The translations under genes and the position numbers were made by a program. 64,000 bases of DNA from Dimorphilus gyrociliatus (taxonomy: Eukaryota; Animalia; Annelida). Below are positions 8,613 to 24,684 of this stretch, piece by piece; position 1 is the first letter of the stretch, and every line of letters begins with the position of its first letter. The stretch spans positions 4,356,408-4,420,407 of the forward strand of contig CAJFCJ010000006.1 in NCBI GenBank assembly GCA_904063045.1, in the 5' to 3' direction. Under the pieces are notes generated by a model. The model was given only the letters and a program-made list of their open reading frames with translations, had not been told where the DNA came from and did not search any database.

Positions 8613-10771
8613 TTAATCAAGTTTTTTCGGAGGATTCGTATATCCAAAACCTGTAGATCCGTCTCCTGTTCTTTCCATTCGTCTTTTAATCATTTCTGGA
8701 CTAATTTTTTTCATTCCGTATGCCTGTCCAATCCAAGCGCAAAAGTCAATAAACGCTGTTGTACAATTTCTTCCCCAACCAAATTCCGATGCAGAATAAT
8801 CTTGGGGAAATGTGTGATGGTAATTATGATAACCTTCTCCCAAAGCAGCTACAGCAACACTTAGAGTTTCGACTGGGCTAATTTCGCGATCATAGGGCTT
8901 GTTACCAAACATATGAGCAACCGAATTAACTGCCCAAGTTGCATTCAACACAAGAGTATAACGAAGAATTCCAACGGTGAAGAATGCTGTCCACCAAGAT
9001 TCACCCCAAAAGTACCAAGCAACAAGAGATGGAAAGAAGAAACAGGTAAAAATCATGGCTGGAAGGTATACTCTGAAATAATCAAAAATAAACATAAATA
9101 AAATAAAATTATTCGAAGGCAAATAGTGAGCATATATTATATCAATAGATTACCTAGAACTTGTAAGCCTATATATAGATTATAAAAGTTAAGCTTTATT
9201 TTTGTACTTCACGTAATCATTGAGTTATTACAACGAATCTTAATTTACGAAATATTGATTAGTAATAATTTTATAAAAGGTAATATATCGATATCCTACG
9301 GATAAGAATTAAATTGACTGTGTGAATTTTCTTAGAACTATTATAATTCATAAGTTTAAAATGCTTATTCAGTTGATTTACTAAAATTACTCACTTCCTT
9401 TGAAATACAAGGACAGGATCGGCTAGCAGATCATCAATATTAACTCTTTTTCCTTTAGCCCTAACCTCTGGATGCTTTCTGACCAATAGCCATCCAACAT
9501 GAGAAAAAAAGAAACCTCGGTTTGCGTTATGGGGATCAGCATCCGTTTCAGAATATTTGTGATGAACGCGGTGATCACGAGACCATTCAATGACATCATT
9601 TTGGAAGGCCATTGTATTCCATATTGCAAGAACAATTCTCAAAGGAAGTTTAGCTTTGTAAGATCTATGTGCCCATAATCTGTGAGCTCCTGCGGTTATT
9701 CCAAGACCGGACATACCATATGTGACGGCAACTGTAAAATATTCAATTCATCTTAAAAATTCTACCATATCTTACTGATATTGACATAAAATATAAATAT
9801 TGAGGGAGGAATACGATCATAGTTACGTCACGTTAGAACACCTGATAAGAGGTATTTTGAGATAAAATAGAAAGGGAATTGACAAATGATTGATTAAACT
9901 TGTGTTTATTTATAGATATAATGAGGGAAGCGGTATATACTAAATAAGATATAAGATCACTGAACCAACTTCACACTTAAACAAAAAAAATCGTTAAGCA
10001 TTCTAAATTTTAAAATAAAAGATCAACCTTTTTCGTAAAAGATTCTTTTGAAGAAAAGAAACCTACATTTTAACGAGTTACTTTGCGTCGAGTTAGTGAA
10101 CTTTTACTGTTTTATGATAAAGTGACCTTGGCTTTAGAAAATATTAAGTGTATTCTTTTTTAGTAGGTCAGACAACTTGTACAATGAATGTTATATAAAA
10201 AAATATCTTTTTGGGAATTTTTCCAAATAACTATAATAGCGAAAATATAGTTATTACATTATATACTCCTATAACTTTAATAAGTAATTAAATATATAAT
10301 AGCTTCCTCTGTTTTTATCTTTCCCTAAATTTCGCCAGGTAAGAAGATATGTGACTGACATTCAATATGGTGTTGGCATAAATATTAAACTAGTTTTGAA
10401 TAATATTTATTTAGATGGTTCTCTTACAGTTAAATAAAAAATAGAATTAGTCTATTTGAATTTATAATAATTCTTGTTCTAGATCTTGAATTCTGTTTTT
10501 GCAGACATTATCTAGTCTATTCTAACGTCTCATTAAGCCTATTAAAAAAATATAACTTACACCAAATCCAACTTTGCCATTTGCAGTAGTACATTAAATA
10601 AACTCCATAAAGGGCGGCTATATGCAAATATATCATCCAAATTACGTTTCGCCAAACAATTTTGGTTGGAGGTTGTTTAGCTGGTTGATTTTGTTCTATT
10701 ACAGCTTCCAATTCATCTTTCTGATCAGCTTCTGTCACGTAGACACATTTTTCCAAATTTCGGGGAGGCAT
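8613..10771 (-). CDS. SCD: Acyl-CoA delta-9 desaturase (3 coding exons plus a probable 5' non-coding exon ending ~11146)
   Basis: His boxes HRLWAH, HRVHH, HNYHH; GITAGAHRLW, NANRGFFFSHVGWLL, GEGYHNYHHTFPQDY; GT-AG junctions at ~10560, 9733/9396, ~9073. Confidence 0.97.
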
Positions 10772-11977: not shown

Positions 11978-14379
11978 ATGGATAACATCTCTAGCAGTTC
12001 TACTGATGCTTCAGGTGATGAGGATGTTTTGGAGAGCGACATAACTGTTTTTAAATATCCAAACCAAGCTTCAATTATCTATAGGGGACTGGAAAAACTG
12101 TATAAAGACCGGCAGTTTACCGATGTAACTCTAGCTGCCGGAGGTCAGAAATTTTATTGTCATAAAGCCATTTTAGCAACTTCTTGTCCCTATTTTATGA
12201 CTATGTTTAATTCCTCCTTCAAAGAAAGTTTAAACGATGATGTTGCGATCTCAATTGAAAGTAGCACACTAAAATCAATACTAGACTTTATTTATTCCGG
12301 AAGTGTTCAGCTAGACGTCGAAAATGTGCAAAGTATATTATCAGCTGCAAATTTTTTGCAGCTAAATGCACTTAAAGATGGATGTGCAAAATTTATGGAA
12401 AAACATATTACGGAAGTCAACTGTCTCGAAACCTACTTTTATGCTAAAGCACACGAATGCCAATCATTAGCCCACCAGTCTCTTATGCTTTCTTGTAAAC
12501 ATTTTACTGAAATATCGAAGAAAGATAAATTTTTGAACTTACCTTTTGATAAGGTAATTGATATTATATCACGAGATGAATTAAATATCGACAATGAAAG
12601 AATAGCTTATGAAGCCTGTTTATCTTGGATAAATCAAGATCTTCAAACTAGAAAGCAATACACAGTTGAATTAATGCAAAACGTTCGTTTTGCCAATCTT
12701 GAAGTTTACTATTTCTGTGATAATGTTGCCAACAACGAATTATTACAACAACATAATCAAATAAGAACCGTTGTAAAACAAGTTGAATATTACAATTTGG
12801 TTAGAGAAAGAAAGCATGAAATTGATTTAAATTCAGTACCAAGAGCTGGAATGTCTTATGAACAAGGCGTGTTAATGGTAGCGAATCCTTATCATACAAT
12901 GTATCCAGATAGGGATGGTGTTGGTGATGGTATTGATTGGTTGAATGTGAAAACAGGAAAGACTACACAAATAACTAGTTTATCAAATCCTCTTTTCCTA
13001 CCAGGTAGTTTTCAATAACTGAGAAAAAAAAGAAAGTAAATATTTACAAATTTCCAGGTGTTTGCGTTACTGGTGATGGTCATATATGTATTGCTGGTGG
13101 AGCTATTAACAGAGGAAAACGATTTGGTATTTCATCAAAAAATCACTATTTCTTTTTAGCTTTCAAATGTTTCAATAAATTTTATTTGTACAGCTAAAGG
13201 AGACTTTAAAGTTTCAAAGAAAATCCAAATAATGTACAACAATACAAGATCTCAATATTTAGACTTGATAGTATGCGAAGAAGAGCTACAAACTGAACGC
13301 GCTATGTTCAATTTATGTCTCCTTGACGGGTATGATAATGCATTTTGCACGTTCTTACTTATCTCATCATCTATTGATATCATAAACAGACACATTTTTG
13401 CTGTTGGAGGTCATACTAATGATGGCGTTACATCGAGCGTCGAAAGTTTTGTTATAGGTTGGCTTTAAAGTATTTTTATCATATTGTTAGCTTTCTAAAT
13501 CTAAAATATAGATAAAACAAGTATTAAGAGTACAACTCGTCGTTCTCTGCCTCGACCATTGAGAGGATCAGCAGCAGTATCTTTTAAAGGCGCGCTGTAT
13601 GTCTTTGGTGGGGAAGATGGTGATCAAGTATTTAAAAGCATTTACAAGTGCTAATATCCTTACTGTGATTATATTAGTATAACTGATGACAACAATAAAT
13701 ACCTTTTAGATACGACTTAGGGCGAGACGTATGGCGTGAAGTTTTGTCATTGAAGTGTGCAAGGAGCTTAGCCGCGTGTGTTGTTTATCGTAACAAAATC
13801 TGGATAACAGGTTTTTATCAGGATAAATATAACTCTTAAAAGTCTTTATAAGTTATTTTTAAATAATGATTAGGTGGTTGCTCTACCGTAACAAACAAAT
13901 GGAAGACCGAACATATGGCAACAAATTGTTTGAGTAGCGTTGAGATATATGATCCCATTACAAACAAAATTACTTTTGGACCAGAATTACCTTTCGATAT
14001 ATGCGGACATGGTAATTAAATATAATAGTCAATGTGTTGAGTAATTCACATATCTAATTTATTAAGGAATCGTCAAATATGCAGAAACTTTATGGATAAT
14101 AGGCGGAGAACAAGCTAACGGACTTGTTGCTGGCATTTACAAACTGAAACAGTTACAGGACGACTCATTCTGTTGGGATGAAGGTCCAGAATTAAAGGTT
14201 TGTAATGAATCATTGTTTACATTTCAATAACGTATTACGATTTGTTTTTATTTCTACAGTTGCCAGTCTCCACATTTGGGTATTTTGTTACTAATATTTC
14301 AAAAGATTATTCATTTTGGACGCAAGAATCAGATAATAAGGGCTATTATATTGTGAAACCGTATTCTAATATATACTAA
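11978..14379 (+). CDS. BTB-BACK-Kelch (KLHL family) Cullin-3 adaptor, multi-exon
   Basis: FTDVTL..FYCHKAILATSCPYFMTMF BTB, BACK helices, then short exons with Kelch GG motifs (ICIAGG, FAVGG, LYVFGGED); last exon 14260..14379. Confidence 0.9.
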
Positions 14380-19346: not shown

Positions 19347-20636
19347 CTAATCGGGAGCGTCAATAGAAATGATTGGTACAACAGGCTTCGGAGATTCGTC
19401 TATACTTTTAATTTTTATATGTGCACAACTCCCTTTTTCTTGTCTGTTGGAATTTTGAGATGCGTCAATGATTGGAGCTTCAGGTGGTAGTTTATACGAT
19501 ATATTTCCATATTCTTGTAATAGTGGACATATACCAAGCAACCATGAGCAAAAGTCTTTTCTTAAGCCGAACCACCCTATTAAAATAATGAAATATTTTT
19601 AAAACAAGATAATAACAATAATGATTGTTCATTTTCAACTTACAAAAGTTACTACTTCGTGATTCGAAAGACATTATCATAAGTGTAAAAAAAGAAATGA
19701 GTAACGGAAGTGTAACAGCTAAGTAAGTATGATTTTCTAAGCCATCTTCCTTATTCGTCAAAAGAATCTGGAAGACTAGTAGTGGTATAACCATACATGT
19801 ATATCCTATAGCAATAAATAAATTTCCTCTTCTCTGTTCAGGAACAATATCTGAAGACTTGACGAGAATTATAGCTAGAATGATAGCGTATAAAACCCCA
19901 ATAAGAGCAACAGACATTACAAGCCATAAAGGAATAAACACCAAAACCCATTTCCATTTAATAAAATTGTCCAATTTAAGGGCGATAAAAATAAATTGAA
20001 GAACATTGACAGAACAGAACAACTCTAACTGAAAATAAATTTTTGTAGTAGACAAGAATTTACCATAAAATTAAGAAAAAAAATGCCTACTTCAAAATTC
20101 CTGTCAACTTTAATAGACCAGAAACAAACGGCGAATGATATAAGTGATAAAAATACCAAAGGAATAAAGATTAGCATCCAATACAATTGTTTCCTGTACT
20201 CTGCGTTTTCTAGCTTATCACACATTAAGAGCTCAAACATTAAAAGGAGAAGATGTAATCCAGTGGACACGATCATAGCTTTATAATGTGTGTATGCTCC
20301 ATTTTCTAACCTATAGGATGGATTACGCCACCAAATCATTGTTCCACTGATACATCCAACTATTACTAGCGCTTTCCAAATCCATAATGGTAAAAAGACA
20401 ATCCAATAACTCCACTCCACGCTATTGTCAAATTTTAATGCAAGTAGAAGGCAGAACACGAGTAGACATCCATAAACAACGAATTTGCTGTTAGAGAATC
20501 AGGGTTATAAAATTGTTGTTGCTTATTTGTTTACAAATTGTCAATGTGAATTTTTACAATTATTATTAGATAACTATAAAACCTACCTAGGATTAAAATC
20601 TTTGAATATACCACGAACATTAAACTCCAGAGGCAT
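19347..20636 (-). CDS. TMEM185A: Transmembrane protein 185 (FAM11)-like
   Basis: First exon MPLEFNVRGIFKDFNP-SKFVV; repeated LKFDNSVEWSYWIVFLPLW motifs; C-terminal PVVPIISIDAPD. Confidence 0.9.
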
Positions 20637-20908
20637 AATTTTCTATCACTATCTTTGAATTATATCTATCTATTTCTAAAACTAAAGATGTTATCCATAA
20701 TAGGTTTTTTTTATGACACTGCAGAGAAACTTTCGTATAAAATTTTAGTATCTTTTTATTATTTATAAAATTTTACTAAATATTTTATATAAATTTTACG
20801 TATTATAACTGAAATTATTTATTCTTTTAAGTAAAATTCGAAATATGAAAACAACTTCCGCTTTTAGGTAAACTGGTAATTGACTTGTAATGTTTTGCTT
20901 AGACAAGC

Positions 20909-23900
20909 ATGGCAAATAGGCGAGAGATGTCCAACCTAACTGTAATCGTTAAAACGTCTAAGGATACAAAAGAACTAACATTTCCAAAGAAAAAAACCGT
21001 AAAAGAGGTTTGTAAAATTTTCTAACACGAATATGTCACGATTTATACTGCTTGAAATATTATTTGCTTAAGTTCTTCTTCAGGCCCCAGTTGAAGTCTC
21101 TTAAATAAGTTTTTCTTTTCATAACAGCTACGAAAAAAAGTTGCTCAATTGTTTTTGGCTGATATTGAAAAAGTTCGTTTGGTATTTTCCGGAAAAATTC
21201 TTGAGGACGATGACACTATAAGTAAAAGTAAAATAAAAAATAAAGATATCTTGCACCTAGTTATTAAAGATAATGAGGTTAGTTGGCCCTTGAACAACAT
21301 TACTATAACAATGATAATTCATTTGCTTATATAGGGTTCGTCTAATGCTCAAACTTCATCAATCGAGGACGAAATAGTTCCTAGACCTCACGGTGGTTTT
21401 AATTTTAAGAAAGTCAAACCCATATTCAGTGATGATTCTAAGTAAGTATATTAGTCATAAATACCGTCACCAAATCTCATTAATTTCTTTCAGATTTCTA
21501 TTATGCGCTTCGGGTTCTTTAGTTAAGATAATTAATTGCCTCCAAGGAGAAGTTGTTCAAATTCTAAATGGCCATACAGAACCAATAACTGGAATTGATT
21601 TAGATTGTTACGAGCCATCTAAATACGTTCGTAATCATTCATTAATAAATAAACAATTATAAATTTAATGAATTATGTACTTTTCAGTGTTATACAGTTT
21701 CAGCAGATGATACATTAATAAAATGGGATTATTTGGAAGGTCTTGCTATCAAAGGGTACAATGTAAAAAACTGCAAGACGTTAAAGTGTATAAGAGGATC
21801 GCTATATTCCATTCAAGGAAATCAGAAAAAGAACATAGTAAAATTAAATTTTAATGGTGATAAAATTAACATAGAAAAGGTACATAATATTGAAGGAAGA
21901 TATAATTTGGAAGAGCGTTATGATTTTGGCAATAGAGTACGTTCTCTTAATTCCTAAGTTTCAATTTCTCATAAGATTTCTTCTACAGTTTAGTTTTCTC
22001 GGATTTGTTAATGCCTGGAGTTGCACTGTTATGACACTAAATGACAAAAATAACCAACCTAAAAGATGGTAAATAAAGAAATTTTCAATTATATTAGAAT
22101 AAATACACCTACCTTCTTTTTGTAGGAGTTATGTAAATTGCCCATTAAGATGCATAGCTTGTCATCCTGAAGCCGAAATTGTCGCAACAGGAGATGTTAA
22201 AGGTGCCATATATATTTGGCGTAACATTTTTTCTGATGCACCTATTACACTAAAGTTACATTGGCATTCGTTACCCGTTTGTGATATAGCATGGAATTCT
22301 CATGGTACAGAATTGTTGAGTGTTGGTTATGAATGTGTTTTAGTAAGATGGACAATTGCAACGGAAGAAAAGCGATTTCTTCCTCGACTCGGTGCGCCTC
22401 TGACATTTGTTAGAATTTCAAGGAATAACCAACAATACGCCCTATCTCATGATAATAACGTTTTGACTCTGGTTTCAAACAATTTACTAGTTCAGAATGT
22501 CATTTCTGGTATGGCCGATAATGATAATAAAGTAAAATTATTATATGATCCTAGATCACGTTCCATTATAACAAATGGCTTGCCAGGACACCTACAATTT
22601 TATAAAGTTCAAGATGATAAGCAATTATATTACATAGATGCCGTGGGTCAAAATTATATATCACCTGAAAGTTTGGATAAGCCTTTGAAATACATAGAGA
22701 TAGAGGCTGCAGCGATTAATTCAACTGGAACTTGGCTATGTACATACGAAAGAAGGAATGATGTTTCATTAAGTATTCCATCTAAGTTGAAATTTTGGAG
22801 ATGGTCTGCTGTTGATCGTACTTTTGTTCTTTGCGTGGAGTTTATTTCAGCGTTCCGCGGAAAAGTTAATACTTTACGTTTTTGCAAATCTATAATGAAT
22901 GAGGTATTAGTAGCTACTAGTGAAGATCAGTGTTTTAAGATTTGGAAGAATAGTGGAGAATCGAAGTGGATATTTCACAGAAAAGGATCGCATCTATCTC
23001 TTCCATCAACTGTAGCTGATTTTAGTAAAGATGGATCTTTGTTAGCTGTTTCTTTTGGGAATTATCTTACTTTATGGCGATTTGACGAAGAACTTGAAAG
23101 ACGTGCAATTTTGGAACATGAAAGTTCAGTTTTATTTTGTGAATTTTGTAAATTTAAATACGTTCATATTTTACTATCTGCAAGCGATAGTCAAATAATT
23201 TCCTGGGATTTATTAACCTGCTCGGCTCTATGGAAAGTTAACACAAATGTTAGCCTTTTAGCTTCTGATCCTTTATCAGAATATTTCGCTGTGTTATCAA
23301 CAAACAACCAACGTTAGTATCAGCCATGTAAATTTAATTTATAATGTACTATAAGAATGTATATGTATTTTTTAACAGTATATATTATTCAACCATCCGA
23401 AATTGAGCCAACATTTTCTCTACCTAATATATGCAAATCAGAAGTCTCATCAATGGTTTTTGTGCCAAGAGAAGAACCAAACGATGAATTACCTGAATGG
23501 ACCTGTAAATCTCAATTATATTTTTGGTCTAAGGAAGAAGGTTTATACTTAGTGGATAGACAAAATACTGAATTACTTAAGGCACGAAATCGAATTAATT
23601 TGAGTTCGAATGTAAGAAAGAATAAATTAGCGGAATTAATAACTCACTCTTTCACTCGAAAAAACCCGTCAAATCAAGATAAAAGAATTGACAGATTTAG
23701 TGAGCAAACGGCATCAAACGTACTTTTACGAGCTGTAAGTTATACTTAGACTATTTGTCAATAAACTCTATTTTTTGTGCTTAAATCACCCAGGTCAGTT
23801 CTGTATCGAATAATATTTTACTTATAACTGATATCTCGCCCTCCTGGCAAGCTGCCGCCTTGAAGCAATTACAGTAAGCATTTTTGTCATTTGACTTGAC

Positions 23901-24171
23901 GTTTTGTTAATATTTCTCAAAATTGAACAGATCGAATTCATCAGAAAATGAAGATATATCGCTTGATTTAAAAAATCTTGAAATTGATGAAGAAAAGTTT
24001 CAGAAAGCCTTAATGGCCTCAAACAAAATAAGATCAGTTGTTGAAGATTCTAATGTCACTAGTGAAATAGATATGAATGAAATTCCTGAAGAAAATATCG
24101 AAAAGAAGAATATTACACCAGCAACGAAAATACCAAACAGTGTTGAAGACGTATTGAAGTTTGTTATGTAA
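20909..24171 (+). CDS. WDR75: WDR75/UTP17 SSU-processome WD40 protein preceded in-frame by a ubiquilin-type ubiquitin-like domain
   Basis: Exons 20909-21007, 21128-21277 (UBL), 21335-21441, 21494-... ; GGFNFKKVKPIFSDDSK-FLLCASGSLVK, LHWH, KRFLPRLGAPL, LPGHLQFY match WDR75. Confidence 0.85.
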
Positions 24172-24684
24172 CATTATATAACATTTTGTTATAGGTCAAA
24201 GCATAAGTCGATTTGTAAAATAAAAGAAAAAATTTAAATATATGAAAGTTTAATTCAGTTAAAGAATTTTATATTTGTGAATTTCGGTATAATAAAGGAA
24301 TATTTTATTAAGTTTGAAGCGTTCTAATCGTTTGTTACTTATTAATAATTGATAAGTAAATCGGGTTCGGAATTAATAAAACACATTTTTTCTATCACAT
24401 AAATACACAAGTATCTCTTTCTTCTCTGTTAAGCATTTTAAGGCAGCATATATCAAAGCGCTTTTTCAACCCAATTGATTGTAAGATGTAATAGCATAAT
24501 ACTTAGTATAACTGCAATAGATTTATCACTAGAATATATACTGTATAGAAGCTGGTTGCAAATTTTTACACATCAAATCAGCTTTTAGTTGCATGCAATA
24601 TCTTCAACAATAGCGAATGACGCATAATCGTCATTTTCAAATAGGATAGTATTGTTTTCCCTCTTAGAAAGAATCATTTAACAA

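Follow-up and report, generated by a model that had tools for sequence, protein, structure and literature searches.

Only two ribosome assembly factors, Ytm1 and Rsa4, were named as carrying ubiquitin-like (UBL) domains in a 2021 review (PMC8122580), and both use these domains as handles for a removal machine (PMC8122580, PMC6624252). Canonical WDR75 (Utp17/Nan1), a subunit of the UTP-A complex represented in the human (7MQ8), yeast (5WLC) and Chaetomium (5OQL) structures, has no UBL and starts with a methionine placed 8-25 residues before its first strand. In the 64,000-nucleotide stretch of DNA of the annelid Dimorphilus gyrociliatus analysed here (the window; contig CAJFCJ010000006.1, positions 4,356,408 to 4,420,407 of the forward strand, assembly GCA_904063045.1), the WDR75 gene departs from this arrangement, given that a splice acceptor stands in the place of the methionine and 83 residues encoded by UBL exons lie ahead of it. 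The remainder of the protein matches the canonical one, with the same two propellers (PF23869 and PF23769), the same N-terminal strand motif and the same acidic C-terminal tail. The analysis confirms that UBL-WDR75 is a real, expressed, conserved and lineage-restricted gene fusion. A preliminary description, made from the letters of the window alone, had proposed an in-frame, lineage-specific fusion of this kind, and this proposal holds: the fusion occurs in D. gyrociliatus and one relative, whereas about 270 other WDR75 proteins lack it.

The gene occupies positions 20909-24171 of the forward strand, where all of its ten exons are found, and these exons are joined by consensus splice sites into one frame of 2682 nt, i.e., 893 codons and a stop. 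Exon 1 (20909..21007, 33 residues) contains Met1 and Met7 as well as the first third of the UBL, comprising strand 1, strand 2 and the start of the helix. It is separated by a phase-0 intron of 120 nt that falls within the UBL (intron 1, 21008..21127, GT..AG) from exon 2 (21128..21277, residues 34-83), whose 50 residues provide the C-terminal two thirds of the domain and end in HLVIKDNE, with neither a stop codon nor a di-glycine (diGly). Intron 2 (21278..21334), with 57 nt, GT..AG borders and phase 0, is the junction between the UBL and WDR75. Exon 3 (21335..21441) encodes a serine/acidic linker that corresponds in the alignment to the very N-terminal tail of canonical WDR75, followed by the first WDR75 strand (GGFNF..KPIFSDDSK). 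The first β-propeller begins in exon 4 (21494..21626, PF23869 positions 8-44), continues through exon 5 (21688..21936) and exon 6 (21989..22068), and ends in exon 7 (22126..23312), which also encodes most of the second propeller. Exon 8 (23379..23734) completes the second propeller and enters the C-terminal region, and is followed by exon 9 (23794..23873) and by exon 10 (23931..24171), which encodes the acidic tail and the stop codon at 24169-24171. The end of exon 6 was set at the GT/AG pair (22068|22126), the corresponding contig joint being listed as 22067 to 22125 ("cut +1"). The translations of exons 1 and 2 and the phase-0 intron at 21278-21334 given in the preliminary description were re-read and are correct, and the short introns agree with the description of the D. 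gyrociliatus genome (PMC7854359).

The position of the methionine codons in this frame bears on the nature of the product. The ATG of exon 1 stands in a good context, with A at -3 and G at +4, and is preceded by an in-frame TAG 9 nt upstream. Residues 1 and 7 are the first in-frame methionines, and a reading of the sequence found no in-frame ATG in exons 2-5; the next methionine is residue 261 in exon 6, the first past the UBL and deep in the first propeller. Therefore, any full-length WDR75 translated from this gene must include the UBL. A second TAG (21332-21334) lies directly 5' of exon 3, so that the frame would end there if intron 2 were retained. These observations bear out the earlier claim that the WDR75 part has no start codon of its own. 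It is clear that the agreement of these sequence facts with a UBL-WDR75 fusion is far beyond chance.

Transcript evidence was obtained from the assembled contigs of two public runs, designated X1 and X2. Run X2 (organism A) provided one spliced contig of 5095 nt, which starts at approximately position 20967, so that it includes about the last 39 nt of exon 1, and carries all of the joints through exon 10, among them those of exons 4 and 9, the joint 21007|21128 within the UBL and the fusion joint 21277|21335. Run X1 belongs to a different study, of a coral metatranscriptome, and provided a contig of 235 nt that is spliced at 21441|21494. The nine loose letters standing before position 21333 in this contig match the final letters of exon 2, and the contig therefore crosses the joint between exons 2 and 3 independently. 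Reads over the junction 21277-21335 had been proposed as a check of the fusion; the joint is present in the X2 contig and supported by the X1 contig. Operons and trans-splicing are not reported to occur in the D. gyrociliatus genome paper (PMC7854359). As a separate observation, the X2 contig extends about 2.3 kb past position 24300, beyond the stop codon, which could be a very long 3' untranslated region (UTR) or a merger with the transcript of the next gene through overlapping 3' ends.

To characterize the two parts of the protein, the spliced model was searched exon by exon. Exon 2 alone matches the Pfam ubiquitin family PF00240 with 41.2 bits (curated cutoff 25.4; E 1.5e-10) over model positions 24-70 of 72. 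Since the match starts at position 24, it leaves 23 model positions, which is the length of exon 1 counted from approximately residue 10, and the length and hydrophobic pattern of exon 1 fit positions 1-23 of the model. Together, exons 1 and 2 read as a complete-looking β-grasp domain of the ubiquitin family, spanning approximately residues 9-80. The preliminary description had called this domain ubiquilin-type. The UBLs of ubiquilin-1 and -3 are indeed matched by exon 2 with 26 bits over residues 1-48, next to about 24 bits per ubiquitin unit among the PDB matches, and both Pfam and the ESM Atlas, where only ubiquitin-family clusters were retrieved, point to the ubiquitin family and to nothing narrower. 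The term "ubiquilin-type" is fair wording for the closest sequence neighbours, and as a class it is only weakly suggested by these scores. The NLE family was absent from the Pfam matches of the exons at E values up to 1, and no second copy of the UBL was found in the rest of the window.

The WDR75 part is far less ambiguous. PF23869, the family of the first WDR75 propeller, is matched by exons 4, 5 and 7, and exon 7 matches PF23769 with 173.6 bits. The best solved-structure match of exon 7 is human WDR75 in the small-subunit processome (7mq8_LH, E 8.6e-68), followed by fungal Utp17/Nan1, and its named top database matches are all WDR75, across animal phyla. By these similarities, exons 3-10 are assigned to a clear WDR75/UTP17 orthologue, and the gene is the organism's single WDR75/UTP17 gene. 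Its product is expected, on the grounds of orthology, to be incorporated into UTP-A and the small-subunit processome.

An exhaustive search of representative proteins seeded with exon 7 revealed one close relative (P0001), which derives from genomic contigs of another sample set and is 89% identical over this exon; all other representatives are at most 41% identical. The locus of the relative (L001) shows synteny, TMEM185 on the minus strand being followed by WDR75, and contains exon 1 at 8837-8935, exon 2 at 9056-9205 and exon 3 at 9262-9368. Its first intron has 120 nt as in the window, with 78 of the 120 positions identical, and its second has 56 nt compared with 57 nt in the window. The UBL exons of L001 have the same phases and GT..AG sites as those of the window, and contain no stops. 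Between the two species, 29 of 33 residues are identical in exon 1 (proportion of nonsynonymous differences, pN, 0.052; proportion of synonymous differences, pS, 0.698) and 27 of 50 in exon 2 (pN 0.234, pS 0.623), giving pN 0.162 and pS 0.654 for the whole UBL. For comparison, exon 3 has 26 of 35 identical residues (pN 0.140, pS 0.717) and exon 7 has 351 of 395 (pN 0.062, pS 0.725). Given that the synonymous sites are saturated and the introns have diverged to about 60-65% identity, the much lower pN than pS of the UBL argues that this domain is under purifying selection, which is less strict than that acting on the propellers. The shared architecture also indicates that the fusion is older than the split of the two species.

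The comparison of the two sequences is also informative with respect to processing and to the binding surface. No diGly follows the UBL in either species, the sequences being HLVIKDNEG|SS in the window and HLAVQEKET-SS in the relative, as the preliminary description had noted for the window. The single glycine of the window that aligns with G76 of ubiquitin is a threonine in the relative. The lack of a diGly together with the lack of conservation of this glycine therefore makes processing of the deubiquitinase type very unlikely, and the UBL is very likely a type-II, integral domain, to judge from these alignments. The ubiquitin core positions L43, F45, L50, I61, L67 and L69 are conserved in the UBL of both species. 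In the surface patch, K48 and H68 of ubiquitin are kept, and I44 is conservatively replaced by valine in the window and is isoleucine in the relative; R42 is arginine in the window and cysteine in the relative, V70 is valine and alanine, respectively, and L8 is serine in both. From this pattern, the fold appears clearly maintained and the classical receptor patch only partly so. The preliminary description had suggested that the UBL could connect UTP-A to the proteasome; a classical proteasome link of this kind is a possibility that we regard as doubtful.

The distribution of the fusion was evaluated in a survey of about 270 other WDR75 proteins, drawn from the top-ranked few hundred of several thousand matches. 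No UBL was found in any of these proteins, which include those of Capitella, molluscs, a brachiopod, echinoderms, arthropods and vertebrates. The domain architecture of WDR75 had been named as a test of how unusual the fusion is, and it was seen in none of these roughly 270 proteins. Searches by BLASTP with exons 1 and 2 revealed no UBL-like sequence in the 150 best WDR75 representatives, among which the crustacean, bee and spider members fall. Long N-terminal extensions occur in 31 representatives; a Pfam scan of these found 37 families, and the 25 of them that were listed include no ubiquitin family, while the extension of one representative (P0065) is basic and of low complexity. Likewise, word-index searches of precomputed Pfam domains found no PF00240 in about 200 named WDR75 proteins, a set that includes bivalves, gastropods, a cephalopod and a chiton among the molluscs, together with a brachiopod, nemerteans, echinoderms, hemichordates, amphioxus, many vertebrates, a priapulid and the annelids Owenia and Capitella. 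The Owenia model (P0007) is truncated at the N-terminus and hence uninformative on the UBL, and the sampled Dinophiliformia are the window species and its relative. In a literature search, WDR75 and "ubiquitin-like domain" were found together only as incidental co-mentions.

The same survey locates the fusion point. In an alignment of WDR75 proteins (A5), the canonical methionine lies no more than one or two residues away from where exon 3 begins, as illustrated by MSASTE.. and MAASTE.. standing opposite GSSNAQ.. of the window and TSSNAQ.. of the relative, and therefore the UBL was grafted exactly at the ancestral start codon. The ATG of Capitella WDR75 is located at the fusion point, which was verified on the genomic locus, and a tblastn search for a UBL-like exon in the 10 kb upstream of WDR75 in Capitella and Owenia returned nothing below E 0.8.

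Some public WDR75 models were found to be overlong, among them P0171 (Pinctada imbricata, 1266 residues), P0172 (NAN1 of Mytilus coruscus, 1208 residues), P0045 (2068 residues), P0102 and P0040, and one overlong model, which bears the name "pachytene checkpoint protein 2 homolog", contains AAA ATPase domains. Such models have the appearance of mergers between neighbouring genes and not of real fusions, and none contains a ubiquitin domain.

The explanation that we consider likely is that the gene produces one protein of 893 residues, in which WDR75 performs its usual UTP-A role and carries a permanently tethered, uncleaved UBL as a docking module. Two short 5' exons are spliced in phase 0 onto the exon with which the coding sequence of WDR75 formerly began, where the ancestral start codon stood. 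The product consists of the UBL, a flexible serine/acidic linker of approximately 20 residues, the two WDR75 β-propellers and the acidic tail, and every full-length WDR75 molecule carries the UBL given that there is no other in-frame start before residue 261. The WDR75 part would act, as it normally does, as a UTP-A/t-UTP subunit within the small-subunit processome, and the UBL would stay attached as a protein-docking module on a flexible leash, for which the most likely candidate partner is a receptor of ubiquitin or UBLs, such as a proteasome subunit, a UIM/UBA protein or a segregase adaptor. Docking of this partner would permit control of the amount of WDR75 or of its removal from pre-ribosomes.

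Several observations weigh against this explanation. The X2 contig does not reach the start codon or the initial 58 nt of exon 1, and contigs of this type cannot reveal minor or rare isoforms. Exon 1 alone gave no informative match to Pfam or the PDB, being too short a query. The UBL evolves faster than the propellers, with 54% identity in exon 2 versus 89% in exon 7. Moreover, the two patch positions that differ between the species, R42 and V70, weaken the case for a classical contact with proteasome receptors.

With respect to the first of these points, the invisibility of minor isoforms in contigs leaves some room for two separate genes or a minor read-through chimera, in which the UBL exons would form a short gene of their own upstream and the start of the main WDR75 mRNA would lie elsewhere; retention of intron 2 would indeed yield a stand-alone UBL protein of 101 residues. 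Nonetheless, this arrangement is largely refuted and has become hardly credible, because exon 2 lacks a stop, exon 3 lacks a start and the next methionine is residue 261, because the roughly 300 bp between exon 1 and the 5' exon of the divergent neighbour leave little room for another first exon, because the relative shares the frame, the phases and the splice sites, and because the junction of exons 2 and 3 occurs in two independent RNA data sets. Cleavage of the UBL after translation, to yield free UBL and canonical WDR75, would place the protein with the precursors from which ubiquitin and FUBI are released, given that N-terminal ubiquitin or UBL fusions to ribosome-related proteins are normally processed (PMC8122580). 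The absence of a diGly, the replacement of the G76-aligned glycine of the window by threonine in the relative and the alignment of the linker with an ordinary WDR75 N-terminal tail make such a cleavage extremely unlikely.

The remaining alternatives accept an integral UBL and differ in its function. It may have no external partner and be a cis-acting aid to the folding, solubility or expression of a two-propeller protein, as proposed for the ubiquitin of eS31 and eL40, with the difference that it is never removed. The conserved hydrophobic core positions together with surface positions that vary between the two species would suit such an aid, and ubiquitin fusions are known to assist the production of ribosomal proteins (PMC8122580). 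We consider this unlikely, given that about 270 other WDR75 proteins manage without a UBL and that a pN/pS of approximately 0.12-0.25 indicates more constraint than a mere spacer needs, a ratio that does not separate the aid from docking. The N-terminal UBL followed by a WD40 propeller in an assembly factor, as in Ytm1 and Rsa4 (PMC6624252, PMC8122580), and the flexible linker of the UBL, would also suit a handle for a mechano-enzyme that pulls WDR75 or UTP-A off the maturing pre-ribosome, in the way that the metal ion-dependent adhesion site (MIDAS) of Rea1/MDN1 grips the UBLs of Ytm1/WDR12 and Rsa4/NLE1, or by way of p97-type segregase adaptors. This is very improbable for a domain of the classical ubiquitin family, which is not of the NLE/MIDO type and gave no NLE match, and in a 90S factor, given that Rea1 works on the pre-60S particle. 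Returning to the docking module, its most far-reaching form would make the protein the third assembly factor to bear a UBL "handle", and the first such factor of the small-subunit processome, with a UBL that recruits the proteasome or a segregase to extract or degrade UTP-A. This form appears rather improbable; if true, it would be an evolutionary re-invention of the logic of Ytm1 and Rsa4 with a different class of UBL.

With regard to the neighbourhood of the gene, a TMEM185-like gene is located at 19492-20613 on the minus strand, head-to-head with WDR75. Its transcript contig contains an intron of 99 nt (20488-20586) and a 5' exon that reaches approximately 20613 (~20587-20613), and the ~300 bp between this exon and exon 1 of WDR75 form a shared, probably bidirectional promoter. 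The head-to-head arrangement is kept in the relative (L001 7513-8212, minus strand, PF10269). About 50 nt upstream of the WDR75 ATG (window 20858-20919; L001 ~8786-8850) are approximately 90% identical between the species, versus about 60-65% for the introns. This block contains an out-of-frame ATG at 20890 that opens an upstream open reading frame of nine codons, which ends at the TAG 20917-20919 and overlaps the main ATG; the same upstream frame is longer in the relative. The block could be a 5' UTR element, a core-promoter element or a putative translational control. Further upstream, the window contains an ATG-initiated open reading frame of 346 codons at 11978-13018 (forward strand), and at the corresponding upstream position L001 (526-1560) contains one of similar size, with 344 residues and BTB and BACK domains, the two being likened by size and place alone. 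Rfam and tRNA scans of the window found nothing.

The reach of these results is limited to two related meiofaunal annelids. Within them, a core 90S/UTP-A subunit has naturally acquired a classical ubiquitin-type domain, the fusion being expressed and kept by selection, and this provides a clean case of a domain gained precisely where an ancestral start codon stood. It is also a ready-made experiment on whether docking to ubiquitin receptors can regulate early small-subunit assembly or processing coupled to RNA polymerase I.

When compared with known systems, the fusion protein shares with Ytm1/WDR12 and Rsa4/NLE1 the order of domains (UBL followed by WD40), the process in which they act (ribosome assembly) and a UBL that is likewise unprocessed. 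In Ytm1 and Rsa4, however, the UBL is of the divergent NLE/MIDO type and is gripped by the MIDAS of Rea1/MDN1 on the pre-60S particle, while here it is a classical member of the ubiquitin family on a 90S factor, and the NLE match of Pfam that marks Ytm1 and Rsa4 is absent. As to the proteasome shuttle factors ubiquilin, Dsk2 and Rad23, the UBLs of ubiquilin-1 and -3 match exon 2 best over its full length among single-domain solved structures, barely above ubiquitin. The spacing of strand 1, strand 2 and helix agrees with this group, as read by eye, and its UBLs are likewise integral and without a diGly. The STI1 and UBA domains of ubiquilin are missing from the fusion protein, whose remainder is WDR75, and the patch residues are only partly kept. 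Finally, ubiquitin-eS31, ubiquitin-eL40 and FUBI-eS30 also have an N-terminal domain of the ubiquitin family fused to a component of ribosome production. Those fusions end in diGly, are cleaved and have a ribosomal protein as partner, whereas the UBL of the D. gyrociliatus protein has no diGly and its partner is an assembly factor.

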